A program made the position numbers and the translations under genes. Positions 6,215 through 60,032 of a DNA stretch of 64,000 bases are shown one piece after another. Positions within the stretch are counted from its first letter, which is position 1. Each line of letters opens with the position of its first letter. The DNA comes from Parasitella parasitica NRRL 2501 (taxonomy: Eukaryota > Fungi > Mucoromycota), in the NCBI GenBank assembly GCA_025201805.1, contig MU619282.1, forward strand, positions 154,540 to 218,539, given 5' to 3'. The notes beneath the pieces were generated by a model. It worked only from the letters and a program-made list of their open reading frames with translations, had not been told where the DNA came from and searched no databases.

Positions 6215-7360
6215 TTCATTGATTGGCAGCTGTTTTTCTTCCTCTGTCCAGAAGCCATAAGTCTGCATCATTGGAGAACTTATCCCCCAACCTGTGTCCG
6301 AACTGTCCGTGGTGATTATGATCTTGGGCTTCTTTAGTTGAATTTTGTGGATGGGTAACCCGTTCTTCTTGGTTATGAACTACTTCCACCACATTAGCTC
6401 CTCCATTGCTAGTGTGGACAATTGACATCGGTCTTCCCAGTTGTAGTTCCGTTGAGTCAGGCTGATTGCCAAGCTCCTCTGTAAGTGGCGGATGTGCAAT
6501 AAGGCTTCGCCCACCGCAGGTAACATGGCGGTAATCTTCCCAAGTAGTCCAGCAATCCATCGGCAAGATCTTGTTATGGGCGAAAGTGCTTGTTTGATCT
6601 TTTGTATCAGCTTCTTGACCTTCAATTCCGGTACCTTGATCTTCATGGTTACTGTGTTGAATTGAAAACCCAGATATTCCTGTGTTTGGGATGGAGTCAG
6701 CATGCTTTTCCTCCGGTTGATAACGAATCCTAAGGACTCGAGATGATGTATTACCGTCTTTGTTATTTGTTCCAAATCCTTTGCGTCCCTTGATAGCAGA
6801 CAAATGTTCAAATAGTACACCAAACAGATTCCTTGTTTTCTTAACGGTTCGATGGCATGACGCAGTATTTTGGAAAAAATTCTTGGGGCTACATTTAATC
6901 CGAAATTTAGTGATTTGTATTGGTAAATTATGCCTTCGTTTTCGAACACTAAGAAAGGTTTGATTCTGGATGTATAGGTATTACGGTGTATGCGTCCTGC
7001 AAATCCAGCTTGACCATGTAGTCTCCTGATTCTATTAAATCTCTTAACGCCGGGACGCCTTCCATCTTGAAATGCTCCACCTGTATACATTGATTGATTC
7101 GGCGGCAACCCAGAATCGGGCGTCTCTTCGTTGCTTCCTGTAGTGTGAAGAACCTGGATAGGAAACCTCGTGATCGCGGGTTGTGGCATACTTCTATTAT
7201 TCACGCTGTAAGAAATTTGTTTACGGCAATGTTGATTTCGTCTTGCTCTTCTCTTGGAGTTGTAGTTCTTGGTAAGCGCCAAGGACTTGGTGTTTGAGCA
7301 AACTGAATTTGGTAACCTTCTTTGATAATCTTCAGTGGCCACGGATGTTGAACGATCTTT
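6215..7360 (-). mobile_element. DIRS/Ngaro-type retrotransposon RT-RNase H remnant
   Basis: YQYKSLNFGLNVAPRIFSK, degenerate YLDD (YYLNIC), KSMLTPSQTQEYLGF, EELMWWK, then in another frame the RNase H start TIITDSSDTGWG...GFWTEEEKQLPIN. Confidence 0.8.
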
Positions 7361-7409
7361 TGCCAATTGTGTAGACATCGAAAAGATCATTGACTTCGAT
7401 TCACCACCT

Positions 7410-8703
7410 ACCGTAATTCCAACAGTGGACACAACTATGGAAATCGACTCGCTTACGGAAAGCATAAAAGATTGTATCTATTGACGACGGTAGCAAAAAG
7501 TACAAGAAGTACACACCCGAGTAAGTGCGCATGTTCATACAGATAATGCAAGACGAAGGCACTACTGTACCTAAAGCGGCAGTACATTGTAACATTCCTC
7601 GACAAAGCGCTTACAGGCTGCTCAAGGAATTCAACGATAGCAACGGTAGTGTACTGTCTGGTTTTGCTCCGAAAGCCAAGAACAGAGGTACGAAACAAAA
7701 GCTTTTCGATCAGCATTCCCTGTTTTTGATTAATTACCACAAGTCTACAACACTTGGATTGGCCAAAGAAGTTCTTCCCAAGCAATTTCCAGACTTGGAA
7801 GATATTTCTATGCCTTCTCTGTGGAAGCATGTAACAGTAAATTGTGCTTTTTCGTTAAAAAGTGCATCTATATACAACGAAGAAAGAGACGCTGAACGAA
7901 CACTTCGCCTTTGCTGTGAGGTGGTAAGTAGATGGAAGGAAATTGGCGTCGACTTTAAAAAGAATTGCGTATTTGTAGATGAAGCAGGCTTTAATACGCA
8001 TATGATAAGAGGGCGAGCTTGGTCCAAAGTAGGAGAGCCAGCGAATGTTACTGTTCACAAGCAAAGAGGTGCTAATATCAGTATCGTTGGATGCATTGCG
8101 TATTTTGGAACAGTCATTTTTTCAAAAGTAGAGAGCCTTTAACAAAGGTAGCTGCAGAAAAGCTTGAACAAGAGTATGCAAACCCTGCCACCAAAAAAAG
8201 AAAAGCAAAAGACCCTGAGAAGAAAAAGCCTTTGAAAAAGGGAACCACGGCATATCATATTGTCAAGTTTTTGGAAGCAACAATGGAGACACTTGATAGG
8301 CACGACAAAAAGGGATTTTTCATAGTAATGGATAATTGTAGAATTTACCACTCTGCATTTGTTGCTGATGCTATTAATAAGAGAGGGTATAAACCTTTGT
8401 TCATGCCTCCTTACTCTCCTTTTTTAAACCCGATCGAAGAATGCTGGTCAAAAATAAAGAGCAATATCAAGAGAAACCCACTTGATAAAGCAGATAGTTT
8501 GACATCGCGTCTTCCTGGAGCTTGCGGATCTGTTACTGTTCAAGACTGCCAAGGTTGGATCAGACATGCTGAGATCTTCTGGGACAGGTGCATTAACAAA
8601 GAACTAGGATTAAGGTAAATATTATCACTGTATGTTATCTTTTTCTACATATTTAATCCCAAAATGAAAAAATTCGTCCCAACTTATGCGGTATCAAAAC
8701 CTG
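7410..8703 (+). mobile_element. Tc1/IS630-family DD34E transposon, 5'-truncated, frameshifted transposase (7525-8618)
   Basis: CVFVDEAGF, VMDNCRIYH...PPYSPFLNPIEECW; frameshift at ~8135; right end ...aaaacctg|TA at 8703. Confidence 0.88.
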
Positions 8704-8928: not shown

Positions 8929-9843
8929 TTAGGATGAACTCTTGGGAGCAAGAGTAACAGCCAAAACTACGATAAGAATAATAATAATAATAACAGCAAT
9001 ACTAAAACAGATCCACTTTTTACGACGCATAGACATTGCAGATGTTTTCGCCTTTTCAACAAATTGAACACCTTGTTCCAAATTGGCAGTAGTTTCAAAC
9101 GCACTCTGCTCGATGGTATCCAGCACCTTGGACTGAGCATTCAACATAACTTGCATCTCTTCAAAGAGCAGAGACAGCTCTTGCACGCTTTTGGCCAAGC
9201 GTTTGATGTCCTCATGACGTTCTTGTACGGCATCCAAAGTGGTTTGAGCCTCGTGACGTCTATAATCGCCACTGACAGATTGAAGCAACTGTTGAGTAAA
9301 CACAGCACCTCCACCTTGCTCTGCATTAGCGATGGCTTTTTGAATGTCTTGGGAGGTGGCATTCGGATTAGCAATCTTAATTTGTCTTTCCAGCTGTCTC
9401 CCTTCTTCCTTTTGAAAGTTCAACGCAACTCTACGGTGATTTTCAATGGCATCCATAAAGGACTTTGTTACAGAGCTAAAGGCATTCTTTCTCATGGCCA
9501 GGTCGGTGTGTCGAGAGGTCGGTTCGATCTCTTTCAGCTTTTGTTTAACGTGTGTCATGATGTTTTGAGTGTCTGCGGTGAGTTGATCAAGTCGCTGACT
9601 AGAGTCGTCTCTAGCGTCAACAGTTTGAAGTATGCTCGATTGCAAGGAGCCGATAGCCTTGACGTTGACATTGATCTGGGTTATACTTTCCTTTACATGA
9701 GAGACTTGGTCAAGAAATCCCTCGACAGAAGTGATATCGCCAGTGGTTGACAAAAGGGGGCGCATCTCATAGCCTCCGCCTACATTCCGATCCGAGCTAC
9801 CATTGTTGTCTCTTTTGAGATCTGCAAGTCTATTTACGCTCAT
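8929..9843 (-). CDS. Plasma-membrane syntaxin (Sso1/2-like t-SNARE), intronless
   Basis: Habc helices, SNARE motif (VQERHEDIKRLAKSVQELSLLFEEMQ), RRKKWIC plus C-terminal TM helix; likely start MSVNRLADL. Confidence 0.93.
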   Translation of the reverse strand: MSVNRLADLKRDNNGSSDRNVGGGYEMRPLLSTTGDITSVEGFLDQVSHVKESITQINVNVKAIGSLQSSILQTVDARDDSSQRLDQLTADTQNIMTHVKQKLKEIEPTSRHTDLAMRKNAFSSVTKSFMDAIENHRRVALNFQKEEGRQLERQIKIANPNATSQDIQKAIANAEQGGGAVFTQQLLQSVSGDYRRHEAQTTLDAVQERHEDIKRLAKSVQELSLLFEEMQVMLNAQSKVLDTIEQSAFETTANLEQGVQFVEKAKTSAMSMRRKKWICFSIAVIIIIILIVVLAVTLAPKSSS

Positions 9844-10729
9844 TTGGTAGAGGAAAAAAAAGAAAAGAAAAAAAGGTAAAGGTGTGGAAGAGAGAAAGAA
9901 AAGAAAACGAGGCAAGACATTATTATTGTTATAAACAAATGTCGGGGTTGTGTGATAGACAATCTATTTATATTTCATTTCCTTTAGGCAAAAAAACAAG
10001 GGGCTCAGCCAAAAAGTGTTTATTTGAGTTTGATTAGCACTTTTGTACGTATCCAATTACATTAATCAAGGCAAAGCCAAGCACTCTTTTTATTGCTCTT
10101 TTTTTTATTGAAACACATTAAATCTTGCCTATGGATCTCTCAAGATATTTTTCTTACCCACCATTGCTCCGGTTGTTAGTAAACTGTGATTTTTTATTAT
10201 CAACATATCGGACAACCATCTCACTCTTTGTCCTGACAGATTGTAACAATATAAGCAAACAATAATAATAAAAACATCAGTGAAAGCTGTTAAACAAACC
10301 ATAAACCTTACAAAATAGACACACTAGACAGGCACATAGATCAAGTTAAGCGCCTATCCATACGTGTTATACGCTTAATATTGACTATAATTAATCTTGA
10401 TCGAGTTTACCACCATTCTTGCAGCAACATTCAGTAAGAATAGCGGGATTTGAATAGTGGAGATGGATTCCAGGAACAAAACCACAAAACACCCAATACA
10501 CATGATAAGGGTAGTTGGTGTATTAAGTACTCTCCAATTGATCAAAGTCATGAATTTTTTGATATTTACTTTCTTCTACTATCAATATGCCTCCTTTTCA
10601 GACTAGAAATTGCACAAGCTGCAAAATTTCTCTTCCTGAAACCTCTTCGTTCCGAAAATGTGATTCATGTAGTGTAAGTAAAAATTGTTTGCCGAGTAAA
10701 ACTGTAAATTGAGCAAACTTTTTTTTCAG

Positions 10730-11843
10730 GAACGTGCCCGAAACTAGGCCAGACATAGAGCTGCGTCAAGGCCGGCAGCACTCAGAGCACCCAGAGCACC
10801 CGCAGCTTTTGTTTCTGAATTGGCAAGAATGCGAACCTCTGATCTGGGAACGATGAATGTTGAATGTGATGGTTGTGGTGCCTTGCATTGGGAAGCAGAA
10901 AGAGCTACCAATCAAATGAGAAACGACAATTGCTTCTATGCTTGCTGTAAAAAAAGAAAGGCTATATTGCCCTTACTACAAGAACCGCCTGATCAACGGT
11001 AATCATCCACGCTCAGCGCATTGCTTGCAGCATACGAGACAGTACAACACTTTGTTTACGTTTACCTCATTTGGTGCTGACGCTACCCCTGAGCAACTTC
11101 AACGAGAGAGCCAAGAAGAAATCAGAGGTGGGATCATACTCGAATTCGTGTTCATGGAGAACTGTATCATATGCAAGCTCCTTTGAATTTGAACAACAGC
11201 CCAAAATACAACCAGCTGTATATTTATGATCCGGATTATTCTGCTGCAATTCGATCTGCAGATTAACGGAATGAAGGGTTAGACGAGACAATCATTGAAC
11301 AGTTGAGAGAGATGATTGCTAATCCAGATATTTGTGGCAACCCTTTCGTCCAAATATACAAGCACGCTCACGAAATTTTGAGAGAGGAAGAGGAGCGACA
11401 AGCCCAAAATGGTATCAACGAGGATGCTCACATCAGGCTCAATCCTCAGATGCGAATGGAGCTAATTGTTGGTGAAGACAGACGCACCCAAAATCTGCCA
11501 ACTGTCAACGAGATTGCGGCTATTATACCCAACGAATATGCTGACAGGAGTTTCAGAGATATTTTGATCACATATCGAAATAGCTCCTCCTCCAGTGCTC
11601 AGGGTCTTTTCAAAAGAATTAATGAAACGCATGCTGCCTATATGCCTCTTCATTATGTCTTGCTTTTCCCTAGAGACGAATATCCACAGTAGAGAGGGGT
11701 GGGGTGGGGGGGGGGGTTCAAGGGGGATACCTCCCCCCTGACTATTATGTAAACTTCTCCATTATCAATGCTTTATTGTAGTGTAAATTATATCTTCCCG
11801 CAGGGCGACGCCGTCATCGAGCGAAACGAGATCAAACGGCTAG
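10730..11843 (+). mobile_element. Helitron remnant: Rep N-terminal fragments plus 3' terminus
   Basis: MNVECDGCGALHW, ACC, QYNTLFTFTSFGA, NLPTVNEIAAII, AAYMPLHYVLLFP; terminal hairpin followed by CTAG|T at 11840-11844. The 5' boundary is not determined. Confidence 0.85.
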
Positions 11844-12421
11844 TAAAACTTAATACCGCCAAATGGAAATACCTTGGACATAAATAAGATATTGAAATCA
11901 GCCTCTGTTCCATGCAACGTCAATGTTTAATTATTTATCTCTAACGATATTATTGCAACAAAGCTTGAAAATTTCGACAAAATAACGAGGAAAGAAGGAA
12001 GCACCGTCATCAACAACAGTGGTGTTTTAGTTGCGGTGAGTGTAGGTTACTTTTCAAGCTGACTTGTCGTGGACCTTCAATTGTTTAGTCCAACCTGTAC
12101 AGTCAAACCTATGGAAATTGGCGTTTTCACAAAAATAATTGTCACTTTCATAAAAATGATTAACCGAAAGGCAAAAATAATTGGCGGAAATTGAAAAATA
12201 AATGTCACATGCTCAATTCTTTTTGTAATTTTGGCCAAGAATATTTGTCCATGCCAAGTAATTAAATTAGGCGGTTAAGTTACAATATTGTCCCTTTTCT
12301 TCGTTACTGAATTTTGTTATTTTTTTTTCTACTAAAAACATTTTCTAACAATGAGCACATTTTTTTATGAAGATGGACAAGACAACATTTATAATGAGCA
12401 AGGAGAAATCGTTACGATCCG

Positions 12422-13729
12422 ATGGAGGATGTTCTTACACAAATTGATGATCCGAATGTAATTCTTGAAACAATTACTAGCCAGAAAACCTATTTAAGTG
12501 TTAAACGCCTGGAGAAAACTGTTGAAGAGTCTCCTTCTAAAAAGCAACTGAAGACTAAAGTACCAGATTTGGATAGACCATACAAAAACTATAGCGACTT
12601 TACCAGAGAGACGTTTATAGATCGTATGATTGAAAAGCCTGAAGAACGTGGGTTGGTGACTAAGGTTGCAAATGACCTAAATATCAATTATCGCACTGCG
12701 TTAAGATGGTGGAATAGCTATAAAGAAACAGAGGAGATTCCATATAAGAAATCCGAAGAAAACAGTGGCCCTAAAAGCTCGTTCACTGCTAAACATAACG
12801 AGTATCTACAGGGTCTATTGGATAATGATCCTCAACTATTTTCGGATGATATTATGAAAAGCTTGACTGAACAATTTGAAGGCTTCACCATCTCAAAGTC
12901 GCAACTAAATAATCATTTACGTAATACAATGCTTATCACTATCAAGAAACCATTGTTTGAGCCTGAAATAAGAAATTCACCAGAAAACATGGAGACAAGA
13001 TTTGAGTGGTTTATGAAATGGAAGGACTCTAATCTTGATTTTACAAAGAATTGTGTTTTCATTGATGAAGCCGGATTTCACATTAACATGAGAAATAATT
13101 GGGCAAGATCAAAAAAGGGTAGCCCTGCTATAGTAAAACGACCAAAAACTAGAGCGATAACACATACTATTATTGGTGCTATCCATTCATCTAGTGTTGT
13201 TCATGTTGTGATGAAAAAACCTCCACCAAGAAAAGAAAAGCAATCTATTAGTAAAAAGAGAAAAGCTAATAGTGGAACAAAAAGAATTGTAGCTGAAGTT
13301 GATTTAGAGGATCCAGAGTTTGAAGATCCTACTGATAATAAACCAGTAGCAAAAGGCACGACTACTGCGCATTTCGTTAAATTCATGAATGCGCTTCTTG
13401 ATATAATGGACCTTGATGAAAATTTGAAGGGAAATTATATTGTAATGGATAACGCCTCATTTCATAAATCCAAGCCAATGATACGAAAAATCGAACGTAG
13501 AGGTTATAAAGTGATGTACTTACCTCCGTACTCACCTGAATTGAATCCTATTGAACAGTTCTGGGGAGTAGTCAAAGGCAAAATGAAGCGTGATCGATTA
13601 TTGGCTGAAGAAAATTTATCTGATCGAATTGCTGATGCCTGCAATGATGTCCTTATCAGCGACCTCTATGGTTTCTGTAATCACTCAAAACGTCAGATTA
13701 TTAAATGTTATAAAAAAACACCATTCTAA
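12422..13729 (+). CDS. Tc1/IS630-family DD34E transposase (left arm of element A)
   Basis: HTH region, FIDEAGF, MDNASFH-34aa-PIEQFW. Confidence 0.95.
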   Translation: MEDVLTQIDDPNVILETITSQKTYLSVKRLEKTVEESPSKKQLKTKVPDLDRPYKNYSDFTRETFIDRMIEKPEERGLVTKVANDLNINYRTALRWWNSYKETEEIPYKKSEENSGPKSSFTAKHNEYLQGLLDNDPQLFSDDIMKSLTEQFEGFTISKSQLNNHLRNTMLITIKKPLFEPEIRNSPENMETRFEWFMKWKDSNLDFTKNCVFIDEAGFHINMRNNWARSKKGSPAIVKRPKTRAITHTIIGAIHSSSVVHVVMKKPPPRKEKQSISKKRKANSGTKRIVAEVDLEDPEFEDPTDNKPVAKGTTTAHFVKFMNALLDIMDLDENLKGNYIVMDNASFHKSKPMIRKIERRGYKVMYLPPYSPELNPIEQFWGVVKGKMKRDRLLAEENLSDRIADACNDVLISDLYGFCNHSKRQIIKCYKKTPF

Positions 13730-14870
13730 TATATACATATACATTAAATAAACAATTATTTTTAAAACGGCAAACATATATGATTAACTCTAGCCCCAAA
13801 TTTAACTACTTGATATGGACACTTTTTAGAGATTCATTTGGTCTACAGTATTTTGTGTTTAAAAAATATAATGCTTGGTGGAACTAAATCTGTTTCGTAG
13901 ATCACTCCAATACAAACGTTTCAGAAGAGAGTATAATTGTTAGGCCATTAGTGAATGGGAACCTAACCCAAAGATAACAAGTCATCATTGCACTGTGGGG
14001 ACGGCAGTTTTTTTTTTTGGCGAGATGATCTTTGAATTAAACTGGGGCGAAATAGAGAATTAGGCTGGTATAACGTGTCCTTGGGGATAGAAAGAAGTGT
14101 TGCCTTTTAAGTAATTTTGAATAAAGCTTCCAAAGTAGAGGTATTTTAAATTTAATAAAAATTAAGTTTCTTAAAACAGCCCCAATGGAGTTGCTGTGTG
14201 GTTTCCTATTTCCAAATGAAAGAAGGGTTTTAATACTTCCTGCTTATTAAAAGTAATAGTAAAGGATTACTAGAATACTCAAAGCAACGTAAATGTGTTT
14301 TAGAATTCCTAATAGCGGTGCTTTCTTGTGCTAGCCATTTCTTTAAAGCAACTTAATAGCAATGGAAAATATAAAGAAAGGAGATAACGTATTATTTTAC
14401 TTTTTATACAAAAAAAAGAAATATTATCTGTTTTGATTGATCGTGGCCGCAAAAAAAATTAAGGTAATAGAATGCTGGAAGTATCAGCCGAAATACCATT
14501 CGTTAGTGAAGATTACCCAGAATGTGGCGCCAGTTTCAGATTTTCATTTAATAATGCCATAGCGAAGATCATGTTCGTCATAAAAGATTAATCACAATAG
14601 TCAGCTTGAAGTGTAACAAATGTAATAATGCCCTTAAAAATCATACTTTTTTTGCTAGAAAAGGACTTGACCTTGGCCTCAAAAGAAAGGAGGTTTGCAA
14701 AAAGCACAATAATAGATAAAACAGCCAAAGCGAGATATTGTGATTAGTAATTATGTAAACTGCCTTTCTCATATTTTTATGCTTACCAAACGTATGATCT
14801 AAAAAAGCCTAAAGGCAATGATCAATACCGTGATGAATACAAGGAGATAAAAAACCACCAGGTTTTACTG

Positions 14871-15102
14871 AGGGCCTAGGGTATTACACGCACCTAGTAT
14901 CAGACATAACGGGTCCAGCCTAACGGCCTTCAAGCCTCACGCAATGCTGAATTCCAAAGTCATCGCTAATTGGAGCCAAAGCCTTCAACTCAAATAGCCT
15001 CCAGTCACATTAAATAAAGGGCCAAGGGTATTACGCGCACCTTGTACCAAACATAACGGGTCCAGCATCACAGCCTTCGAGCCTCACGCTATGCTGGATT
15101 CC
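14871..15102. repeat. Two diverged 85-bp direct repeats (14871-14955, 15018-15102)
   Basis: agggcc.agggtattac.cgcacct...acataacgggtccagc...gcctcacgc.atgctg.attcc occurs twice. Confidence 0.85.
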
Positions 15103-15332
15103 TCTATTTGAACTAACTGCTATGTGAATTGTCAGAGAAAAAAGAAAAAAGTTTTAGTGGTTTAAACGGGGGTATACTCACAATTTTTTTCGCATTCTTT
15201 TATCATTCGTCATCATTAAAGATTTTTGAATACCGCTTAGAAGTCTGACGTCATAATTTTTGACATAATTCTATTTTTCTCAAAGAAAAAAAAAACCTTT
15301 CATCACACATTTTTAAGTGAAAAAAAGCCTAC

Positions 15333-18300
15333 ATGTCTGATCTATCAAATGGTAATCTCTTATATTAAAATGATAGAAATCGTAAAAAACAGTCCTCAGC
15401 GCTTAAAATTGAATCGTAAAAAACAGTCCTCAGCGCTTAAAAATGAATCGTAAAAAACAGTCTCCAGCGCTTAAAGTTGAATCGTAAAAAACAGTCATAT
15501 TTTTTCATTCAATGCCATCTTTCATGCACCAAGTGTTACAGTTAAAAGATGGCCATACTGCTCACTCAAGATTTGGAATTTTTCTTAACTGCAATGATTC
15601 ATCTGTGTGTTCTTTGAGACCAAGATCTCTTGGAACAAGCCTTATTTATCTAGGATGAAGCATCGATGAACAGCCGTGATGTTCTCGAAACAGTAGACAG
15701 GACATTTAAAGATGTCATGAAGCAATATTTAAATAGACGAAAGACAGGCTGATTTTCCCTTTGGAGGAAAATTTATTGTATTTGTTGGCAATTTTGGTCA
15801 AATTTTACCTATGGTTCCTCATGGCAGTAAAGAAGAAATCATTCAAGCATGCATTCTGACCTCAAATCTTTGGCTGCATGTACAAGTACTCAGCTTAACA
15901 ACAAGCATGAGAGATTAGCAAGCCATGTCATTACATAACGCTGCATTGGCCACCTCATTACAAAATTTTTGCTGATTTCTTGCTTGCTATTGGCAATGGC
16001 TCCTTCCCTATTCAGCCCAACACAGCTGACTTGATTCGTATTCCGTAATAAAATATGCTTCTGCCTGGCAATGTTATTTCTGTCCTTTGCCAACATGTAT
16101 GTGTCTACAACAACTTTGCGCTCACTGCTGATACCACCCGCGACAACTTAATGTCGAAGGCTATCCTGACACCGACCAATGCTTTTGTTTCTAAATTAAA
16201 TGACTTCATGCTTGAGAAGTTTCCCGGTGAATTCACTGAATTCCTGAGTACTGACACGGCGTTGAGTGAAGACGATGCTTTAGAGCAGCCATCAAAATTC
16301 ATGAATTTTCTCAACTGTGGTAGTCTTCCACCTCACCAGCTCAAGTTGAAAATTGGCTCGCCAATCATGATGCTCAGAAACATCGATCCTGCTCATGGTG
16401 TTTATAATGGTACAAGGCTTATTTGTCGAGCATCCACAAGGAACACTATCCAGGCTGAAGTTGCAACTGGAACTTATCAACGCAATGTTGTGCTCATACC
16501 CAGAGTTACCTTTAAACTCGATAGTTGAGCAAGTCGTCGTAGAATTCAAGCGTTGTCAGTTCCCTGTCAGACCAGCTTTTGCCATGACGATAAATAAATC
16601 GCAAGGTCAAACTCTGGACTTTGTAGGGCTGTATCTTCCTGTCTCAATTTTCTCGCATGGCCAATTATATGTCGCTCTATCTCGAGTTAAAAGGCCAGAT
16701 GACATCTCAATTATCATCAACCCCAAGCCAAGAAGGAGTATATGTACATCAAACGTTGTCTATACTGAGATTTTTCAAAATTAACCAACTTCGAGGATTT
16801 AAACAAAAAATACCAAATAATCATAATATATCGTATCTTTATACAATACGTAAATGTTATTTCCACTCATTGTTTCTTATTTCGTTTGATTTAGCACTGT
16901 GTTAAGTGGGACAGCCCGCTGCAGGCGCGAGCTGTGTACCCCCCAATAAGAACGAAGGTCGAAAAATATCACCGAAGCGAAGCGAAGGTCGATTTTTTTC
17001 ACCATAGTTCGGGGGGTGTTAAAAAGCTCGTAATATATTTAAAATAATAGAAATCATAAAAAACAGTCAAAATCGTTGCTAATTTTCAGTCACTTATACC
17101 CCAACTAATTTAAGAAATTGTGTGTGTGTCCCGAGATATTACAAGCACTTCGTGTAATAAAACAGAAGTGGTTCCAAAGCAATCTGTGTTTGCATCAGTC
17201 CAAAATGTACAAGAAGTTTACTTGGTAAGCCTTTGAAGTAAAACCAACTACGGATTACTTTGAGTACATTCTAAGAAGTCCCGATTATTATCAACATTAG
17301 AAAGTAGCATGTTGTAGCAAACGATTAGAATTAGTATAAATACGATAGAATTATTCATTCAATAAAAAATTACTTTTCATGATATACATAAATCATCCGA
17401 ACCCACACTAAGAATATCACATAAACGGGTCATAGTCGTAGATCTCATAGGAATTGTCCACTCAATCCTGTCAACCTTGCTAATGCTGAAAATATTGCTG
17501 CCTCCACCAATGTTAACGACAATGTAGATTTACTTGCTCTCTTTTTCTTCAAAGTGCATTAATTTTAGTTTCTCTGTTAATAGGTCGATGCCATGGATGT
17601 CGACATGGAACCCGAATTGCCAAATGTTGAGGATTGTCAAAATACCCAGGTTCGATACGCAGCATGTGGCAACAGCTTGGACATTCACGCAGGACAAACC
17701 GCCTTTGTCCATTGAATGCCACCAGACAAACGGAGCGTAGCTTTTTCAAACTTGCCATGCAGACTGCTCATCTTCCTGAGCGACATGACTTAGTTCGAAT
17801 GTCTGTTAGATACTTTTCTTGCAATGCATGAGAGAGGAGTTTCGACCGCCAAATTCCAATTATGCTGTGGTTCAGGCCGATATGTTCTTCCACCTTTATA
17901 AGCTTCTATACCACGAGTCATTGCTGATTTGGTCCAAAACAACAATCGTAGAAGCGTAGAGCTCAAGAAAAATGTGCGCTCTTATAACAACGCACTTTGT
18001 TTCACCTCAAAGGGGAATAACTTGGATAGCAGTGTTCCAAATTCACGAAGTGGTGCTTGCGCATTCAGAATCCATGGAAGCATTTACCATAAAATTGGGT
18101 CCTTACTTCCAACGGAAAATAGTTCGCCTGCATTTGCTCAGATCTATGTTTATGATGCCAGCAATGATACTAGCAATGATACCAGCAACAGACATTTAGT
18201 AGCCAGTCATGTAGATGCTCAGACTTTGGAGGAGCTACAACGCTTAATGTATCGAATCAATACAATCGCGCCAGAGACTAAAACTCAAAGAATTATATAT

Positions 18301-20469
18301 GTCATATCTTTATACAATACATAAATGTTATTTCCACTCAATATGTTTTATTTCGTTTGATTTAGCATTGCATTATGTGGGACAGCCCGCTGCAGGCGCG
18401 AGCTGTGCACCCCCCAATTAGAACGAAGGTCGAAAAATATCACCGTAGCGAAGCGAAGGTTGATTTTTTTCACCGTAGTTCGGGGGGGGGGGTGTAAAAT
18501 AGCTCGTTTTTTTTAAAAAAACTTAATCTTACTGCTATGATAATTAAAAAATACCCAACTCGTAGCAATAGACACTTATATATCTGATCATAAGACTCCT
18601 TCTCTGGCAGCCTTTGTCTTGGACCACCAAAGTCTTGTTTCCACATATATTGGACAATTTGACAAAATTACAGACGCCAAGGCTAATCTTGAGAGAAAAA
18701 TGAGGACTGCATACTTTGCCAAGAATCCCAAGAGAAAACGAGGTCCAGGCTTAAAGGTGAATCTTGAAAAACTGTGGTCATCTTCTAAGCTAGATGATTC
18801 AGTCGAAATCGAAGGAAATAAAACTTTAGAGGCATCTATTAAGGCTAGTGGACGAAAGGCTAGAAAGCGACTAGAGGTATTTATTGAATAAGGCTCACTT
18901 ACATCCGGTTTATGTTAATTTTTTCTTCTAATAGAATAAAAATGCGACAAAAGAGAAAGAGACAAAAGAGAATGAAAGTGAACAATCCAGTGAAGTAGAA
19001 AGCTCTTGTATGAGTGATGAAGAAGAGGAAACAGTGGATGAAATTGCATATAAACTTAATAATGAAGATGCCACTGAATTCGAGCAAGCCTTACTTTCTA
19101 ATACTGACTCACCACATATACTGAAGAATGGTCACGACTTTAGCAATAGCTTCAAGAGATTTCAATTAAAATCATATCAGGAAGCAAGGTCTTCTGGTTT
19201 ATTTATTAACGCCAATGTTCATGAAATATTGTAAGTAGGCTTTATATGCATCATTCATTAGTACAGATTCTGAATGGCACCAATTTAGATCTTTATATCA
19301 CACAGTATTGTTGCGAAAAGACCAGCATGACCAAGCAATGTCAAATGTAATTGGACTCGACAATATTCAAGAATTTCACACGGAACTCTTAAATAAATAT
19401 GTTAACCAAGATATAAAGATGGAAAAGAATCTATTCAATGAACTAACCGACATCTTCAGAGTGAGTATCTAATAACGACATCTGACTTACTTTGACAGCT
19501 TACATCCTTTTTTTTTAGAGCGTAAATGAAAAATCTGATCGTAAAGCACTTAAAGTAAAATTACATAATTTATACGAAGCTGCCGACCCATTGGATTCCA
19601 AGATAATTGATATATTGATTAACCTGTAAGTACAACATACATGACCCAATAAAATATTTCTGTTTGGAGGTCTAACATGTAATACATAGTATAAACAAGT
19701 TACCTGGCAATATTCTCATAAATGAAGTGGTTAAAGAATTCGAATTAATAACTAATTATCTTGATACGGTCCTCAGTCCTATATTTCATGATCCCCAAAA
19801 GAAACTGATGTACAGATGGTAGGTGCAAACGCAAAGATCGTGTGATCATCATGCCAAAAAATATATACGCTAACAGCTTTTCTGTAACTAGGCTAAATAA
19901 AGCAACGGAGTCTTCGGGCGATAGATATCCTGATGGTGGCAGTTGCATTGTCAGTCAAAGACAAATTTCTTGTTCTACTGGCTTCTGTGAAGTGAAAGCA
20001 GATTATATGAAAAACAATACTGTTGGTACACATCTAGATTTACTCAGATTATGCATATTCGGCAAGGATACTATTGACAATGAAGATGTGGAGAATGTTG
20101 TCTTATTGCAAGCAGTTGGTAAATTTAGTATTTGTTACTTGCTATTGCAAAATATATTTACATATAGATTTTCATGATATAGGACACCGTGTGATTGTAT
20201 ATCTGTACCAACAACATGATGGTGGTTTTTATTCTGCCTTTGAAGTTGATAGTATTGAAGTTCCCAAATCGATCCTTGAGTTACCTGGTTTCATAATGAA
20301 ATTGGATGATATTAAACGCTTGATCAACCTCTATGAGCTCTTCTGTGCTACGAAGAAGGACAGGTCAAATTTTTTCAAGCGCAAAATACCCTCACCAAAC
20401 ATTTATGAAATGAACACAATCATCAATACCCGCAAACCTAAGAAGGTAAAGACTTCTCTTGAATTTTAA
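15333..20469 (+). CDS. Cargo gene of element A: ~515-aa PD-(D/E)xK nuclease-fold-like protein, 8 exons, Helitrons in intron 1
   Basis: Exons 15333-15351, 18566-18876, 18935-19230, 19289-19460, 19519-19625, 19690-19818, 19892-20118, 20183-20469 splice in frame (1548 nt, all GT-AG); motifs EFELITNYLD..L, RYPDG, GFCEVK, DLLRL..FGK. Confidence 0.78.
15356..17030 (+). mobile_element. Non-autonomous Helitron unit 1 (PIF1 helicase C-terminal remnant)
   Basis: A|TC 5' start, 34-bp subterminal tandem repeats, LPPHQLKLKIGSPIMMLRN, NGTRL, FAMTINKSQGQT, HGQLYVALSRV; GC-rich 3' end finishing CTCG. Confidence 0.88.
15378..15496. repeat. ~3.5 copies of a 34-bp tandem repeat in the Helitron 5' region
   Basis: aatcgtaaaaaacagtcctcagcgcttaaaa(t/a)tg repeated. 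Confidence 0.9.
17031..18506 (+). mobile_element. Non-autonomous Helitron unit 2 (Rep N-terminal remnant), head-to-tail with unit 1
   Basis: 5' end resembles unit 1 (tatat.taaaat.atagaaatc.taaaaaacagtc); GHSRRTNRLCPLN, SYNNALCFTS, FRIHGSIYHKIGSLLP, FAQIYVYD; ~210-bp 3' end nearly identical to unit 1, ending CTCG|T. Confidence 0.85.
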
Positions 20470-21234
20470 TTACCCTTCTTCTTTCTTCCATCACTTTTTA
20501 CCCTATGTACACAAACACATACGTTTGTACAAGCAGCCAGAATATTATGTACTCCTTAAAAAACGCTTCTTTTTTTTTGCAAATTTAATTTGTAAAATAA
20601 AAAAGTTTACCGTATCACCAATGTTTTTGTTGACTGTCAGCGATCTTTTTCTATTCTATTTATGCCCTATTGAGTTTTGACACTTAAAAATTGTGGTCTG
20701 ATCGGTGTGGGATAAATGAAATTGTCTAATAAAGTTAAAATTAAGTAAAGAAAAAAAAGTCGTCTTAGCCCATATATCTCAATGACTTTATCTCAATGAC
20801 TTTGAAATAGTCTCACGTTAGTTCAATCTCGTCTTAGTGTTGCATTAGTTTTTCTCAACCCTTCTGGGGAAACGTATGACAATTTTTTAAATTGTCTTTG
20901 TAAATTCTCTATTTCGCCCCAGTTTAATTCAAAGATCATCTCGCCAAAAAAAAAAACTGCCGTCCCCACAGTGCAATGATGACTTGTTATCTTTGGGTTA
21001 GGTTCCCATTCACTAATGGCCTAACAATTATACTCTCTTCTGAAACGTTTGTATTGGAGTGATCTACGAAACAGATTTAGTTCCACCAAGCATTATATTT
21101 TTTAAACACAAAATACTGTAGACCAAATGAATCTCTAAAAAGTGTCCATATCAAGTAGTTAAATTTGGGGCTAGAGTTAATCATATATGTTTGCCGTTTT
21201 AAAAATAATTGTTTATTTAATGTATATGTATATA

Positions 21235-22542
21235 TTAGAATGGTGTTTTTTTATAACATTTAATAATCTGACGTTTTGAGTGATTACAGAAACCATAGAG
21301 GTCGCTGATAAGGACATCATTGCAGGCATCAGCAATTCGATCAGATAAATTTTCTTCAGCCAATAATCGATCACGCTTCATTTTGCCTTTGACTACTCCC
21401 CAGAACTGTTCAATAGGATTCAATTCAGGTGAGTACGGAGGTAAGTACATCACTTTATAACCTCTACGTTCGATTTTTCGTATCATTGGCTTGGATTTAT
21501 GAAATGAGGCGTTATCCATTACAATATAATTTCCCTTCAAATTTTCATCAAGGTCCATTATATCAAGAAGCGCATTCATGAATTTAACGAAATGCGCAGT
21601 AGTCGTGCCTTTTGCTACTGGTTTATTATCAGTAGGATCTTCAAACTCTGGATCCTCTAAATCAACTTCAGCTACAATTCTTTTTGTTCCACTATTAGCT
21701 TTTCTCTTTTTACTAATAGATTGCTTTTCTTTTCTTGGTGGAGGTTTTTTCATCACAACATGAACAACACTAGATGAATGGATAGCACCAATAATAGTAT
21801 GTGTTATCGCTCTAGTTTTTGGTCGTTTTACTATAGCAGGGCTACCCTTTTTTGATCTTGCCCAATTATTTCTCATGTTAATGTGAAATCCGGCTTCATC
21901 AATGAAAACACAATTCTTTGTAAAATCAAGATTAGAGTCCTTCCATTTCATAAACCACTCAAATCTTGTCTCCATGTTTTCTGGTGAATTTCTTATTTCA
22001 GGCTCAAACAATGGTTTCTTGATAGTGATAAGCATTGTATTACGTAAATGATTATTTAGTTGCGACTTTGAGATGGTGAAGCCTTCAAATTGTTCAGTCA
22101 AGCTTTTCATAATATCATCCGAAAATAGTTGAGGATCATTATCCAATAGACCCTGTAGATACTCGTTATGTTTAGCAGTGAACGAGCTTTTAGGGCCACT
22201 GTTTTCTTCGGATTTCTTATATGGAATCTCCTCTGTTTCTTTATAGCTATTCCACCATCTTAACGCAGTGCGATAATTGATATTTAGGTCATTTGCAACC
22301 TTAGTCACCAACCCACGTTCTTCAGGCTTTTCAATCATACGATCTATAAACGTCTCTCTGGTAAAGTCGCTATAGTTTTTGTATGGTCTATCCAAATCTG
22401 GTACTTTAGTCTTCAGTTGCTTTTTAGAAGGAGACTCTTCAACAGTTTTCTCCAGGCGTTTAACACTTAAATAGGTTTTCTGGCTAGTAATTGTTTCAAG
22501 AATTACATTCGGATCATCAATTTGTGTAAGAACATCCTCCAT
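21235..22542 (-). CDS. Tc1/IS630-family DD34E transposase (right arm of element A)
   Basis: Protein identical to 12422-13729. Confidence 0.95.
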   Translation of the reverse strand: MEDVLTQIDDPNVILETITSQKTYLSVKRLEKTVEESPSKKQLKTKVPDLDRPYKNYSDFTRETFIDRMIEKPEERGLVTKVANDLNINYRTALRWWNSYKETEEIPYKKSEENSGPKSSFTAKHNEYLQGLLDNDPQLFSDDIMKSLTEQFEGFTISKSQLNNHLRNTMLITIKKPLFEPEIRNSPENMETRFEWFMKWKDSNLDFTKNCVFIDEAGFHINMRNNWARSKKGSPAIVKRPKTRAITHTIIGAIHSSSVVHVVMKKPPPRKEKQSISKKRKANSGTKRIVAEVDLEDPEFEDPTDNKPVAKGTTTAHFVKFMNALLDIMDLDENLKGNYIVMDNASFHKSKPMIRKIERRGYKVMYLPPYSPELNPIEQFWGVVKGKMKRDRLLAEENLSDRIADACNDVLISDLYGFCNHSKRQIIKCYKKTPF

Positions 22543-22866
22543 CGGATCGTAACGATTTCTCCTTGCTCATTATAAATGTTGTCTTGTCCATCTTCATAAA
22601 AAAATGTGCTCATTGTTAGAAAATGTTTTTAGTAGAAAAAAAAATAACAAAATTCAGTAACGAAGAAAAGGGACAATATTGTAACTTAACCGCCTAATTT
22701 AATTACTTGGCATGGACAAATATTCTTGGCCAAAATTACAAAAAGAATTGAGCATGTGACATTTATTTTTCAATTTCCGCCAATTATTTTTGCCTTTCGG
22801 TTAATCATTTTTATGAAAGTGACAATTATTTTTGTGAAAACGCCAATTTCCATAGGTTTGACTGTA

Positions 22867-23755
22867 CCTGGCAATAAAAAGAGAAAGGTTTGTTTAGTTT
22901 ATAACTTTGACCTATCCTAACTATTAAATATCATTACATGTTATTTTAAAGATCTCAAATATCAACCAGGATGGATGTTGGACGATTAATAGCGATGAAG
23001 AATTCTGGGATAGCTGGAGAGAATATCTTGAAGGTTGTGATTGCCACGAGTTTTGGTAAGCCTATAGAACATTGGAGGATAAGCCTTATCCATAATTCAT
23101 TTGTTTTCTAATTTAGCCTGGAGAAAGATCACGTAATTGAATGTGGTTACACCATCAAGTGCAAGCCAAGCTATGACCAAGACCTTTATCACCAACTTGG
23201 TGATTATACAACACAATTAGTAAAGTCACCATTCATGACTCATAGCAGCTACCCCTCTCAAGTAATCAAAGCTTTCATGAGGTAGATATTAGGCGTCAAC
23301 TATTTCTATTCCCATTCTAAAGCTATTTTTATCAAGGGAAAGGAAAGAGCCATTTTAAAAGCTTTATCGTGTGATGCACATTGGGAGTTGATTGAGGGAT
23401 CTAATCCAACTGCAAAATATGCTTATGACTATTTTCAGTTTATGTAATTATTGAATCTATTTTGATAAGATGAAATATTGTGCATTTTTTCTATAGGTAT
23501 ACGTATCAAATCAGTAACAATTCCCGTAATCGAGTTTTGCCCTGGTGAATTATTACTGGCTTCGGCAGATGAAGATTACAAAGCTGATGGCCTTATAAAG
23601 TTCGATGGCATGGAGATGTGTCTTTTAGAGACATCAGGAAAGTATGACCTCGTTGACTCGCCGAGGTTTGGTTTCGACAACATTAAAGGTTCGTTTGGTT
23701 GTCTTATGTTTCTACGTAATTTGTTGAAGATTTGGTATTTCGCCAAATTAAGTAC
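22867..23755 (+). pseudogene. Spliced PD-(D/E)xK-like gene remnant, interrupted by element A and truncated by a Helitron
   Basis: Exons reading FWDSWREYL..CHEF / LEKDHVIECG and DYKADGLIKFDGMEMCLLETSG..FGFDNIKGSFG. Confidence 0.6.
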
Positions 23756-54837: not shown

Positions 54838-56498
54838 CCTTATATGTGTTTTTGCGAATTACTAAATTTGTGGTATATAGGGGCATCCTTAGGAATTAGC
54901 TTTCTTTACTGCTAGTGTCTGGTGCAACATTGCGAACTACAACCACCATATAAATGCCACCCTCTCCATTGTTATCGTACCCTTCTCTCATTTTTACCAA
55001 TAATCTCAATTGGTATGAATAATAACATTTAAAGTTGGTTGATATGTTAAACTAGAAATCACGGTCTACAATTGCCCTCAAAAGAAACTCCTCAAATTAA
55101 ATCTTATAATAAAAGGACCTAGGGTTTGATCAAGTCTTTTGAAATCACAAGCGTCATAGCAAATGATAGTATGCCAAAGCGTCTCTTCCTCAAGACAGGA
55201 GTTCAAAAACAACAATTCCGTATTTACGGTCTGATGCTAAGGCTTATATATTGGGCAAAGATGAAAGCGACGGGATACATGTACGAACGCTCCTCTGCAC
55301 AGCTCAAATGGCTTACCACAGTCGTTTTTGCCAACCACGTAAGGTGGGTGTCGACAACAGCATCTTTTTTGGTGTTGTTACTTTTTTGGGATCAGATGAA
55401 CTTCTACCTTCTCGTGGTTGATCCTGTTAATCATTATAACTTAACAGTTATTTTGAGAACTAAAAGAAGTTTCAGTCTATTTGCATTTATATTAATAATC
55501 AATGAATAAATAAAAATGTTTTGTAAATTACATCTTGACTTTTTAGTTTCTTGTAAATGCTTTTTTTTCAATGCTTGCAATAATAACGGGGTTTTATAGA
55601 GATTCTTTAGGGCTCTCTGAATTGAAGCAGCTGCAGTATTTATGATAGAACTTGCGAATATTGTGCTGGTCTCTTCATCAATCTTGAGTTTTGAAGTAGA
55701 GTTTGCGATGGTAATCCTAAAGCTCAGGTTCTAGATGCAGTTGCTTCACATTAAGAAATTTGAAGTGTTAATTCTAACCTCATACTCTGTACAGTATCAA
55801 ATAAAGAAGTTGTGTTCTTTGTCCTCTGGTTTTTTATAGTAAACTGAAAGCTAATAGCATAACATTAAGAATCAACGGAATCTTTCTCAAGATATTTTAT
55901 TTTGTAATCGTCCATGATCAAATAGTTAAATTGAAAGGTTTTGTCCTTGATGTTCATCGTGCCCTTTGATGATCTGTCATCTACTGTTACTTTTAATGTT
56001 GCTGCTGATGTTTTTCATGCTGTTGTTCTTTCCGTTGTTCTTTCTGTTGTTGTTGCTTTTGCTGTGCCCTTTCCACCTCGCTTTCACATTTATGCTTATG
56101 ATAATGCTGGTTACAGCCCATCCGGCAAAACAAAGCAAAGAAAATAATAAGTGCATTATCCTTACAACAATTCATAATTTCTTTTTTGTTACCTTTCATA
56201 CAATAGCCGCTCGATTTAAGGCTGTTCGATATAAGGCTATTCACGATATAAGGCTAAAATTTTTGTGAATTTTTTTTTTAAGCAGGGAGTTAGCCTTATT
56301 AGCCTTATTCGATAACAGTGCTCACGGTACCAATTTGCGGTTTTATATTTTTTTTTGCGGGTTTACAAACTTCCAATTTGCGGGTTTTTCATTGGCCAAT
56401 TTGCGGTTTTTTTATTCTCACTTTACGGGTTTGCTAGATCCCAATTAGCGTTTTTATTTTTTCAATTTACGTTTTACTTTACAAAATAAACAGCTATT

Positions 56499-57833
56499 AT
56501 GTTTTCAATTTCAGGCAAGATCATCTTCGAAGATGGCCAAGGAAATCTCTATAATGAGGATGGAAAAGAGGCAATGGACTGGGAAGAAGATGTAGATCCC
56601 TACAATTTAGAAAACCTAACTAACTTGACTCAGTATAAAGAACATCAACCAGTTGAATTAGATTCAAATGATCCCGCTTTGGATAAACGAATGGAAGACA
56701 TTCAAACCAAAGTTTCAACGGGAAATACTGCAGTTAAATACAAAACATATTCCGTTGACCAAAAAACTTTGTTTTTGTATTATATTAAGATCAAACTTTT
56801 TAAAGCTGCAAAAGCTGCAAAATTGTCTGGAGTAAACGAACGCACTGGACAGCAATGGGCGAAAAGACTTAGGGAAGATCCTGAATGGGATATATATGAA
56901 AAAAACACGAACAAAGTTAACCGAAAATCCAGTCAGCTTCAAGAGGAGCATAAGCTGTATTTGATAAACTACTTTGATGAGTTTTCTCAGGCACGCACAA
57001 AAGACGCAGTAGATAGTTTGACTGAAAACTTCGAAAACTTTAGTTTAAAAGAAACAGTCGTTGGAGAGTTTATCTCAAGGGAGTGCAATCTTTCTATCAA
57101 GAGCGTAACCCGTCACCCTAAAGCTCGAAATAGCCCAGAGAAGCTTAAAGCTCGTCGTGAGTGGGTAGAGTTATGGTCTGAAACCTCAATGGATTTTAAT
57201 ACCAATTGCATTTTCATCGATGAAAGTGCTTTTGATATAAACATGAGGCCACCTACTGCAAGATCGGTTAGAGGAACACCGGCTGTTGTTGTCACGCCTT
57301 CTACTAAGGCTATTAGCCATACTATTCTTGGTGCTGTTTCTGCATTGGGAATAATAAACATTGAGATACGAGTTCCAGTACCACCAAAAAAAGTAAAAGT
57401 AGTAGGTAGCCGTAAAAGAAAATCAACTGCTGTAAAGAAGCCTTCTTTTGGAGGAACTAATTCCGGTCACTACCTTAATTTTATTAAGAAAACTCTCGAT
57501 CAAATGGATAAATATCCTGAGATGAAAGGATTTTATCTCATTATGGATAACTCTCCTATTCATGATAAGAAAGACGGTGATATTGACAATATTATTGAAT
57601 CTAGAGGCTATAAATGTGTTTATCTTCCTCCTTATTCCCCAGAACTTAACCCCATTGAGCAGTTCTGGGCAGTAGTTAAGAGTAAAGTTAGAAGAAGCCA
57701 GTTTGGGAACACTGAGGATCTTAAGACCAGGATCAGTGAAGCATGTAATGAAATTCCTTTCAAACATCTTCAAGGTTTTGTTAAACACTCATTCGATACT
57801 TTTGAAAGATGTTTGAACGAGGAACATATATAA
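56499..57833 (+). CDS. Tc1/IS630-family DD36E transposase (left arm of element B)
   Basis: FIDESAF, MDNSPIH-36aa-PIEQFW. Confidence 0.95.
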   Translation: MFSISGKIIFEDGQGNLYNEDGKEAMDWEEDVDPYNLENLTNLTQYKEHQPVELDSNDPALDKRMEDIQTKVSTGNTAVKYKTYSVDQKTLFLYYIKIKLFKAAKAAKLSGVNERTGQQWAKRLREDPEWDIYEKNTNKVNRKSSQLQEEHKLYLINYFDEFSQARTKDAVDSLTENFENFSLKETVVGEFISRECNLSIKSVTRHPKARNSPEKLKARREWVELWSETSMDFNTNCIFIDESAFDINMRPPTARSVRGTPAVVVTPSTKAISHTILGAVSALGIINIEIRVPVPPKKVKVVGSRKRKSTAVKKPSFGGTNSGHYLNFIKKTLDQMDKYPEMKGFYLIMDNSPIHDKKDGDIDNIIESRGYKCVYLPPYSPELNPIEQFWAVVKSKVRRSQFGNTEDLKTRISEACNEIPFKHLQGFVKHSFDTFERCLNEEHI

Positions 57834-58740
57834 AAAAAAATATTTTAATAAAACGTAATTTGAAAAAATAAAAACGCTAATTGGGATCTAGCAAACCCGT
57901 AAAGTGAGAATAAAAAAACCGCAAATTGGCCAATGAAAAACCCGCAAATTGGTACCGTGAGCACTGTACATCTTTTTGGCAACTTATTTGTCACTTTTCT
58001 TGATGAAATAGAATATACAGTGAATCCATTTTCACATTGCGAACTAGCTGAAAATTTTCATACATGTGACGAAGTTAAATCCAATCAAATGCAGAAATAA
58101 GCTTTTTACTAAAATACAGTCCGGCTGGTGGACATTGTCGGTTACAAGAAAGATAACTGGATTTAATTTGTTAATTAATATAAAAACAATTGTCGGTCAA
58201 ATACGAATAAAATATAATAAGAGGAAAAGATGCTGCTAGGCTTAATTCATAGTGATTAGCCATGATTTAACTAACAGAATCATACAGTGTTTCGGTTTTC
58301 GTTAAAATTAATAGATATTTATTCAATTACAAGCTTTGTCAAGACACTTCTTCAACTGAATTTAGAAAAATAAATAAAAAATTTAAGCCATAACTTATAA
58401 TTATCATTGCAAAAAGCTATATAATAAACCCAAGTACAAACTGTTTGGGCGTAAAATGTCACAAAGATCTATGGTCGCTTACGAATGAACGTTTTTGATA
58501 ATTTTATATGCTATTTTTATAGATGCTATACAACTGTGGTCACGGAGAAAATTCATAGCGTGTCTTTCCAATACTTTAATGTTTTACCATAAATATACAT
58601 ATACTATTATTAATATTAGAGAACATATTAAATGAAATAATTTATTTTTGTGATATAAATTTAACAGCAAACAAATAGTGTTTCTCTTAACAATAAGAAT
58701 AATATTCGTTGTGAGAGGACTTAAAATGATAAACGAAGCA

Positions 58741-59595: not shown

Positions 59596-59887
59596 GAAAG
59601 AAATCTGTGGGAAAGCAAAAAAAAATTAATTTTTTTTTTTTTAAATGAGTTTTATTTGTCGCACGTAAAGATGGACTTACAGACCATCAGAAGCGGTGCT
59701 CAACAATGTGAAAATATGGATAAGGATAATTATACTGAAAAGAAAAAGATAAAATAAATCTAAGATAATAGCGCGAGGAGAAAAAAAATTAATGTAGTTT
59801 TGTTCTTGCTATTTCACAAGACTGTAACTCAAAATAAGTGATGACGTAATTAAATTAATTTTATTTATAGTGACCTAGCGTTTTTTT

Positions 59888-60032
59888 TTACTTTCGTGGT
59901 AGGCATTTTTTTATTTCTTTTGAGTCATCTTTCGTGGGTGGCATTAGGTTTACTTTCGTGGTAGACATTTTTTTATTTCTTTTGGGTCATCTTTCGTGGG
60001 TAGCATTAGGTTTACTTTCGTGGTAGACATTT
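59888..60032. repeat. ~61-bp tandem repeat containing five CTTTCGTGG motifs, upstream of the RRM-like gene
   Basis: tttactttcgtggtag.cattttttt..gtcatctttcgtggg..gcattagg, ~2.3 copies. Confidence 0.85.

Follow-up and report, generated by a model that had tools for sequence, protein, structure and literature searches.

Two identical Tc1-type transposase arms enclose a nuclease-fold gene in the genome of Parasitella parasitica

The subject of this study is a 10,765-bp transposon-like unit, here called unit A, in the fungus Parasitella parasitica NRRL 2501. It occupies positions 12100–22864 of a 64,000-nt stretch of contig MU619282.1 (GenBank assembly GCA_025201805.1, positions 154,540 to 218,539, forward strand); this whole stretch is referred to as the window, and its coordinates are used throughout. 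A preliminary description, made from the letters of the window, had reported a 10.8-kb unit bounded by TA/CAGTC and GACTG/TA (the slash marks the edge of the element), in which 1962-bp inverted arms encoding the same DD34E transposase bracket a cargo gene, and had compared it to a bacterial composite transposon. Both ends were read as described. The arms (12100–14061 and 20903–22864) were compared by direct reading and have 0 mismatches in 1,962 bp; the spacer between them is 6,841 bp. A repeat search of the window returned the pair as 12097–14061 and 20903–22867, 1,965 nt and 100% alike, which is the 1,962-bp arm plus the TA and one chance base. The features of unit A are as follows.

12098–12099, left TA target-site copy, from direct reading
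12100–14061 (+), left arm, 1,962 bp, matching the right arm with 0 mismatches
12100–12282 (+), Tc1-type terminal inverted repeat (TIR) proper, starting CAGTCAAACC
starts at 12131, 12173, and 12194 (+), 13-nt motif AAAAATAATTGKC, three direct copies within the TIR
12352–12421 (+), conserved transposase N-terminus (MSTFFYEDGQDNIYN...), out of frame, from alignment with L055, L056, and L042
12422–13729 (+), transposase open reading frame (ORF), 435 amino acids, DD34E, Pfam DDE_3
13785–13821 (−), relic of the inner (3') TIR, 37 nt, matching TIR positions 146–183
13822–14061 (+), non-Tc1 DNA duplicated as part of the arm, 240 bp, no match in the C83 or Rhizopus delemar relatives
14062–15354 (+), left spacer, element-specific, contiguous with the arm in L056 up to 14562
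15355–17044 (+), multi-copy repeat with C-terminal scraps of a Pif1-type helicase (Pif1_2B_dom, 3e-16), >20 genomic copies at 87–100%
17092–18521 (+), second multi-copy repeat piece, same repeat family on contig C70, ending near 18507–18521
18700–20469 (+), nuclease-fold gene, 7 exons, 464 codons, open, with the PD and ExK motifs in exon 19892–20118
20903–22864 (−), right arm, 1,962 bp, with a second 435-amino acid transposase ORF at 21235–22542 (−)
22865–22866, right TA target-site copy, from direct reading

The outer ends read CCTG TA/CAGTCAAACC... on the left and ...GGTTTGACTG/TA CCTG on the right. Both carry TA/CAGTC, the target and the CAGT-type TIR start of Tc1/mariner elements. The 24-nt terminal sequence was found at these two ends and, even when 3 mismatches were allowed, at no other place in the window (0 expected by chance), which bears out the earlier claim of a single TA-flanked Tc1-type unit with only its outer ends usable. 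As far as the sequence can tell, the two outer TA/CAGTC ends are the only ones that a transposase would be able to cut. The three copies of AAAAATAATTGKC lie within the first ~110 nt of each arm, an arrangement resembling the inverted repeat/direct repeat (IR/DR) type, and the motif had 10 matches in the window versus 0.84 expected. The terminus that follows the TA is common to relatives on contigs C83 and C77 and to the right end of an R. delemar relative, which has a damaged left terminus; in L056, an independent contig from the Joint Genome Institute (JGI), the terminus is truncated.

Long perfect inverted repeats are a known failure mode of long-read assemblers, and the preliminary description had itself raised the possibility that one arm is an assembly duplication. 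The read evidence came from Logan unitigs of run X1, which is of the same organism and may be the source sample but had its reads assembled independently, from organism C (X8, 61 Mb) and organism D (X11), and from an RNA run (X17). Unitig depth in X1 was 281–301 on the arm versus 112–135 on the spacer and flank (~2.1–2.7x). One X1 unitig (19362–20932) spans the junction between spacer and right arm, another starts exactly at 20903, and a third (22838–23400) spans the junction between right arm and flank (22864/22865). The left inner junction is spanned by the unrelated contig L056 (12123–14562, 96.7% identical), and the right inner junction is crossed in both organism D (X11 18767–20977, ~99%) and organism C (X8 20179–20932). 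The assembly holds just two arm copies at 99% identity or more, the next best being 79–85%. Because the arms have about twice the depth and unitigs cross the junctions, we conclude that no arm was duplicated by the assembler; a mis-assembled inverted copy is scarcely credible as the source of the second arm.

The product of the transposase ORF matched Pfam DDE_3 (PF13358) with an E value of 1e-25. Its catalytic residues are D215, D343, and E378, and the 34 residues that separate the second D from the E give the DD34E spacing of Tc1/mariner transposases, in agreement with the preliminary description. Neither copy is a full-length transposase. One T of a run of T near 12411–12413 is absent from both arms, leaving ~24 conserved N-terminal residues out of frame, and the 435-amino acid ORF begins at an internal Met. 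R. delemar and L056 have the missing T, as do contigs of X8, X11, and X17, where it is an extra base at 22550; X1 lacks it. The N-terminal motif FYEDGQxNxYN is also kept in contig C178 and in a second long-armed unit of the window (unit B, described below). The autonomy that had been implied for unit A does not extend to this copy: because the 1-nt deletion common to both arms shifts the conserved N-terminus out of frame, unit A is probably non-autonomous now and mobilisable only in trans. Transposase RNA contigs at least 99% identical were found in a fungal RNA-seq sample, where the spacer right of the nuclease gene was uncovered.

Neither arm of unit A is a complete element with both of its own ends. 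The alignment of the inner-TIR relic scored 37 versus 21.8 ± 2.8 for shuffled sequences, and the outer 145 nt of this TIR, including the cleavage site, are gone. In a composite of the Tn10 kind, to which the preliminary description likened the unit, two autonomous Tc1 elements would have inserted separately, in inverted orientation, around resident DNA that now moves with them. Such a history would leave identical inverted transposase arms on either side of 6.8 kb, each outer end having its TA. However, the arms contain no inner termini; both are truncated at the same base and have 240 bp of non-Tc1 DNA in common; the supposed resident DNA is transposon-associated sequence and repeat debris, not host sequence; and in unit B the duplication extends 496 bp beyond a complete inner end. 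Since both arms have the same truncation and the same extra 240 bp, they are not two insertions but an inverted duplication of one end. A composite origin is already contradicted by these observations, and we give it almost no weight. Tn10 and Tn5 resemble unit A in having inverted transposase-bearing repeats around other genes and in moving by their outer ends, but their IS10 and IS50 arms are complete, independently mobile, and separately inserted, whereas the arms of unit A are not. The analogy with Tn10 holds for how unit A would move, not for its identity or its origin.

The spacer is not the clean cargo segment that had been implied, as about 3.1 kb of it is helicase debris with dozens of copies in the genome. 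A fragment on contig C77 joins TIR positions 1–231 to spacer positions 14353–15186 (93%), and the left spacer is therefore old element DNA; it contains an 85-nt direct repeat (87%) at 14871–15102. When the debris was examined for the Helitron signature of a Rep (HUH) domain and a Pif1-type helicase in one ORF, helicase C-terminal scraps were found and there was no hit for Rep; the two repeat pieces are called Helitron-like debris here. The copy in organism D diverges left of 18507 (a loose end in X11), and the second repeat piece is absent there; at least this piece was therefore inserted later in unit A. A 34-bp tandem repeat (3.5 copies, 15378–15496) lies at the start of the first helicase-repeat piece.

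The gene in the right-hand part of the spacer is real and open, as had been stated, but it has seven exons; the eighth, upstream exon of the preliminary description was unsupported. A gene start at 15333 was rejected because that position lies in repeat debris. The coding exons are 18700–18876, 18935–19230, 19289–19460, 19519–19625, 19690–19818, 19892–20118, and 20183–20469. They are separated by introns of 58–73 nt bounded by GT and AG, and the joined frame has no internal stop. In a poly(A) RNA contig from a relative ~91% identical, introns 18877–18934, 19461–19518, and 19626–19689 are spliced out and 19231–19288 is retained. The exons of the window gene were searched separately, and the joined frame was checked for length and stops only.

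The two core exons matched about ten diverged paralogues in this genome. One intronless paralogue (L043 722–1729, 335 amino acids) has 46 close homologues, all unnamed Mucorales proteins without a Pfam domain. A profile search gave 1,252 clusters at E 0.001 or better, and all ten that were looked up were from Mucorales. Pfam recognized no domain on the nuclease exons or the intronless paralogues, a profile search of PDB sequences with the nuclease family gave no match, and an ESM Atlas search returned only unnamed Mucoromycota clusters. In an alignment of 73 sequences with a mean identity of 15%, residues E142, P182, D183, E202, K204, and D218 are near-invariant; the first five are at least 90% conserved and make up the PD-(D/E)XK signature, and YPDG and CEVK are retained in the window exons. 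The fold was predicted for the intronless paralogue L043, not for the window gene. A structure model from the 73-sequence alignment had a predicted local distance difference test score (pLDDT) of 91.7 and replaced a 17-sequence model with a pLDDT of 52.7. The best Foldseek matches were to the DrdV nuclease domain (probability 0.99, E 0.01). VIA-align gave Z scores of 7.2 for DrdV, 6.9 for HsdR, and 6.8 for BpuSI, with NgoMIV, SgrAI, DUF820, and other restriction-endonuclease-fold proteins at Z 5–7. The alpha-beta-beta-beta-alpha-beta core is present in the paralogue model, at moderate scores. The earlier label of a nuclease-like gene is supported at the level of the predicted fold and the catalytic signature.

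Calling this gene generic cargo proved inadequate, since at many loci, and in another genus too, members of its family neighbour a Tc1 transposase or are enclosed by Tc1 TIRs. A DDE_3 homologue was found within 5 kb of 8 of the 11 nuclease-family loci in this genome; with at least 388 DDE_3 candidates in 32.8 Mb, about 1 in 9 loci would be expected beside one by chance. Contig C25 has 1,853-nt arms, 99.9% alike, around a nuclease gene, and contig C74 has 1,109-nt arms around another, there cutting the transposase. On contig C87 (L037 2174–8677), TA/CAGTG ends and 199-nt TIRs (98.5% alike) enclose a nuclease gene together with two convergent DDE_3 genes only ~37–44% identical to each other. In Mucor circinelloides (L049), the nuclease gene lies in an element of 3.8 kb with TA/CAGTG ends and TIRs of ~215 nt; on either side of the gene are remnants of transposases that face inward, the left one keeping only residues 2–62. 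Several family members in other species have no Tc1 neighbour. Because 8 of the 11 genomic copies adjoin Tc1 transposases, we take the nuclease gene to belong to a transposon-borne family, members of which may sometimes have stayed behind or been domesticated, and not to be a host gene that was captured. Two side observations concern the family in other organisms. Absidia cylindrospora has two convergent paralogues of 464 and 479 amino acids, 4 kb apart (L051 6001–7825 and 11954–13809), with no Tc1 transposase detectable near the pair. Organism C, judged by X8 depth, holds several copies of the gene family; over 18500–20900, the nuclease region is present as two variants of roughly equal depth, and the arms have ~7x the depth of the spacer.

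The long-arm design recurs, as the preliminary description had proposed from a second locus at 56.3–62.6 kb. That locus, unit B (56316–62640), is real and has 2,150-nt arms with 2 mismatches. Unlike those of unit A, each arm of unit B contains a complete 1.65-kb Tc1 element with both ends (56316–57969 in the left arm, with TA/CAGTG also at its inner end), followed by 496 bp of duplicated inner flank. The outer TIR of unit B has ~41 nt more of a CCAATTTGCGG repeat than the inner TIR, and its left outer flank before CAGTG is AA, not TA. Across the genome, DDE_3 hits of equal score formed at least 8 convergent pairs (A, B, and those on C128, C25, C66, C30, C29, and C45), with C74 as an additional case, and divergent pairs on C38 and C14; 150 of the 388 candidates were scored, so these counts are lower bounds. 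Among the spacers of A, B, C45, and C25, only those of A and C25 have the nuclease gene in common; those of B and C45 contain no nuclease-family gene. Common to the design is that the outer edge of the duplication is a Tc1 terminus and the inner edge is arbitrary, which is the outcome that would be expected of template switching during gap repair or of conversion running inward from the TIRs.

Two relatives bear on the origin of unit A. The relative on C83 is degenerate (~4.9 kb, with nested insertions and ~170-nt TIRs), and its 3' TIR begins at the equivalent of window position 13821. The R. delemar relative (L055, GCA_011763605.1, 3327–7953) is 93% identical in DNA over 1,660 nt and has one transposase, ~2.9 kb of decayed internal DNA, and a 52-nt distal TIR; to judge by its sequence, it looks like the state before the duplication. 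We consider it probable that unit A, which carries a PD-(D/E)XK-fold gene, is a single Tc1/mariner element: a 'sandwich' whose inner ends are dead and whose TIR has been hugely extended. In the proposed order of events, the original 3' TIR would first have been interrupted after its innermost ~38 nt, giving an element that consisted of 5' TIR, transposase, spacer, nuclease gene, and distal TIR. Next, the end with the transposase (1,722 bp of Tc1 and the adjoining 240 bp) would have been copied, inverted, onto the other end, either through template switching while the gap left by excision was repaired or through gene conversion that began at the short TIRs and ran inward. The outcome would be a perfect 1,962-bp TIR with two convergent transposase genes. 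Any movement would be of the unit as a whole, like that of the engineered Sleeping Beauty 'sandwich', because only the outer TA/CAGTC ends would be cuttable; later, this copy would have received the helicase-repeat debris.

The Sleeping Beauty 'sandwich' (SA) vector of Zayed et al. (2004), as described in PMC4229213, was engineered to move large cargo. It shares with unit A the Tc1 family, two inverted copies flanking several kilobases, and outermost ends that are the only substrates, and it has complete arms with mutated inner CA ends and no transposase gene (PMC4229213). Unit A differs in being natural, in having inner ends that are truncated away, in carrying a transposase gene in each arm, and in the co-duplication of non-Tc1 DNA.

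A different explanation is that convergent transposases in long TIRs with a central PD-(D/E)XK nuclease are a maintained functional design and the normal form of the autonomous element in this Tc1 lineage. Arm identity could then be kept, for example, by nuclease-induced breaks repaired from the other arm, or the two enzymes could form a two-nuclease transposase like TnsA/TnsB. Different Tc1 subfamilies show the same layout (A, C25, C74, and C87, and L049 of M. circinelloides), and C87 keeps it despite transposases that are only ~40% alike. Over their 1,962 nt the arms of A are without a single difference, whereas copies from other samples diverge by 0.2–2%. More than 1,200 clusters conserve the catalytic signature, the gene is open in A, and that of a relative is spliced and polyadenylated. 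However, the boundaries of the arms are not fixed from one locus to the next, and at some loci they cut into the transposase. Unit B and C45 have long arms but lack the nuclease gene, the R. delemar element that is the arm's nearest relative possesses a single transposase between short TIRs, and many family members in other species have no Tc1 neighbour. On balance, we regard a maintained design as improbable, although it deserves serious consideration.

Tn7 combines a DDE transposase (TnsB) and a restriction-endonuclease-fold protein (TnsA) in one element. Unit A likewise has one protein of each kind; this likeness is an analogy, with no sequence relationship. Tc1 transposases cut both strands unaided. 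A broader proposal is that Mucorales harbor an undescribed lineage of two-enzyme Tc1 transposons, in which the PD-(D/E)XK nuclease is the working partner of the DD34E transposase, the mechanism of this partnership makes the kilobase TIRs with their transposase genes and keeps them identical, and the units cross genera by horizontal transfer. We offer this tentatively and think it unlikely to hold as a whole. In such a lineage the nuclease may, by analogy, provide second-strand or donor cleavage as TnsA does, or induce copying by making breaks.

The geometry of convergent identical arms is also what a silencing trigger would have. Read-through transcription would give a 2-kb transposase hairpin RNA, as in the case of maize Mu killer, and the host would retain the unit for RNA interference (RNAi) against the family. 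Mucorales have active RNAi. The geometry is all that speaks for this explanation; positions 19903–20904 had no RNA coverage in one RNA run (of another organism or copy), and silencing would account for the retention of the unit but not for its origin. We therefore hold it to be very doubtful.

The whole unit may move through its outer ends. The TA flanks speak for this, as does the occurrence of the same inner junctions beside other flanks: the right flank (22909–23400) is absent from organisms C and D, the contigs of which leave the terminus into other, differing sequence, while the non-coding DNA of the unit is ~99% identical there. No empty site was found; the flanks 11847–12099 and 22865–23664 are unique in this genome. 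Searches of the assembly and of metagenomes revealed no second full copy with its own target duplication, and metagenome scans gave no match to the exon 7 protein or to an exact 26-nt pattern that spans the right inner junction.

Several points weigh against the extended-TIR interpretation. With no empty site, insertion of the whole unit in one step is unproven, and a TA on both sides is a weak signal of target duplication. The unitig evidence is limited to the right-hand junctions, and the presence of both arms in cis in organisms C and D is deduced from depth alone (X11: 40 versus 23). For the layout on C87, an old design that has been maintained, or a nested element, is a better fit than accidental duplication in the recent past. 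The structure matches to the nuclease fold are moderate, and the best VIA-align matches were two mitoribosomal proteins at Z 9.

The conservation of the element was compared with that of a neighbouring host gene. The arm DNA is 93% identical in nucleotides to that of R. delemar, and the intronless nuclease paralogue L043 722–1729 (−), on the 5-kb contig C287, is 92–95% identical in amino acids to proteins of Rhizopus arrhizus, R. delemar, and M. circinelloides. The syntaxin/t-SNARE gene that adjoins unit A (8932–9915, − strand) encodes a protein with 68% amino acid identity to Rhizopus, 76–79% to Mucor, and 87% to the annotated Parasitella parasitica protein. A value of only 87% would mean that the gene is a paralogue or that the annotated protein comes from a strain other than that of the window. 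That the element DNA and the nuclease protein are more conserved across genera than a host protein suggests horizontal transfer, although for C287 the pattern is the signature either of such transfer or of a contaminant contig. The neighbourhood is rich in transposons: an ORF with an RVT_1 reverse transcriptase domain lies upstream of unit A (6383–7465, −), and a ~20-copy repeat (11300–11846) ends 250 bp to its left.

In textbooks, the Tc1/mariner element is the minimal transposon: a single gene between short ends, with an activity that drops steeply as size increases. Literature searches turned up no description of a Tc1 element with transposase-bearing kilobase TIRs or with a PD-(D/E)XK partner, but several known systems share parts of the design. 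KolobokP elements are composite-like eukaryotic DNA transposons, and KolobokE carries a PD-(D/E)xK nuclease similar to lambda exonuclease (Kojima and Bao 2022, PMC9587614). KolobokP resembles unit A in belonging to a eukaryotic DDE lineage, in the unusual length of its terminal repeats, and in having a nuclease gene as an accessory, but differs in its superfamily (Kolobok), TTAA targets, direct repeats, internal transposase, and His-Me finger nuclease (PMC9587614). A second gene for a DNA-processing enzyme is also known from the ciliate elements Tec1 and Tec2 and from Fanzor-bearing fungal Tc1/mariner elements (PMC3212892; PMC3627910). These are of the Tc1/IS630 type like unit A, but their second gene encodes a tyrosine recombinase or a TnpB-like RuvC nuclease, respectively, whereas that of unit A has the PD-(D/E)XK fold. 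Tec elements also have long TIRs, of ~700 bp. The maize Mu killer is a Mutator-related inverted duplication of a transposase-bearing end. Galileo is a long-TIR, foldback cut-and-paste element of the P superfamily (PMC4168063). Galileo and Mu killer share with unit A kilobase TIRs or the inverted duplication of a transposase-bearing end, but they belong to other superfamilies (P and Mutator), and the Galileo TIRs have no transposase gene. Unit A is an unusual but explicable derivative of a known superfamily.

As a natural 'sandwich' with dead inner ends, unit A shows how Tc1-type elements can carry 7–11 kb in a eukaryote. The regular pairing with a large, fast-evolving Mucorales family of nuclease fold points to a possible second enzyme in the transposon life cycle, and makes that family a candidate source of new DNA-cutting activities. 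That these elements are nearly identical in different genera is relevant to horizontal transfer among moulds, a group in which some members fuse with their hosts.

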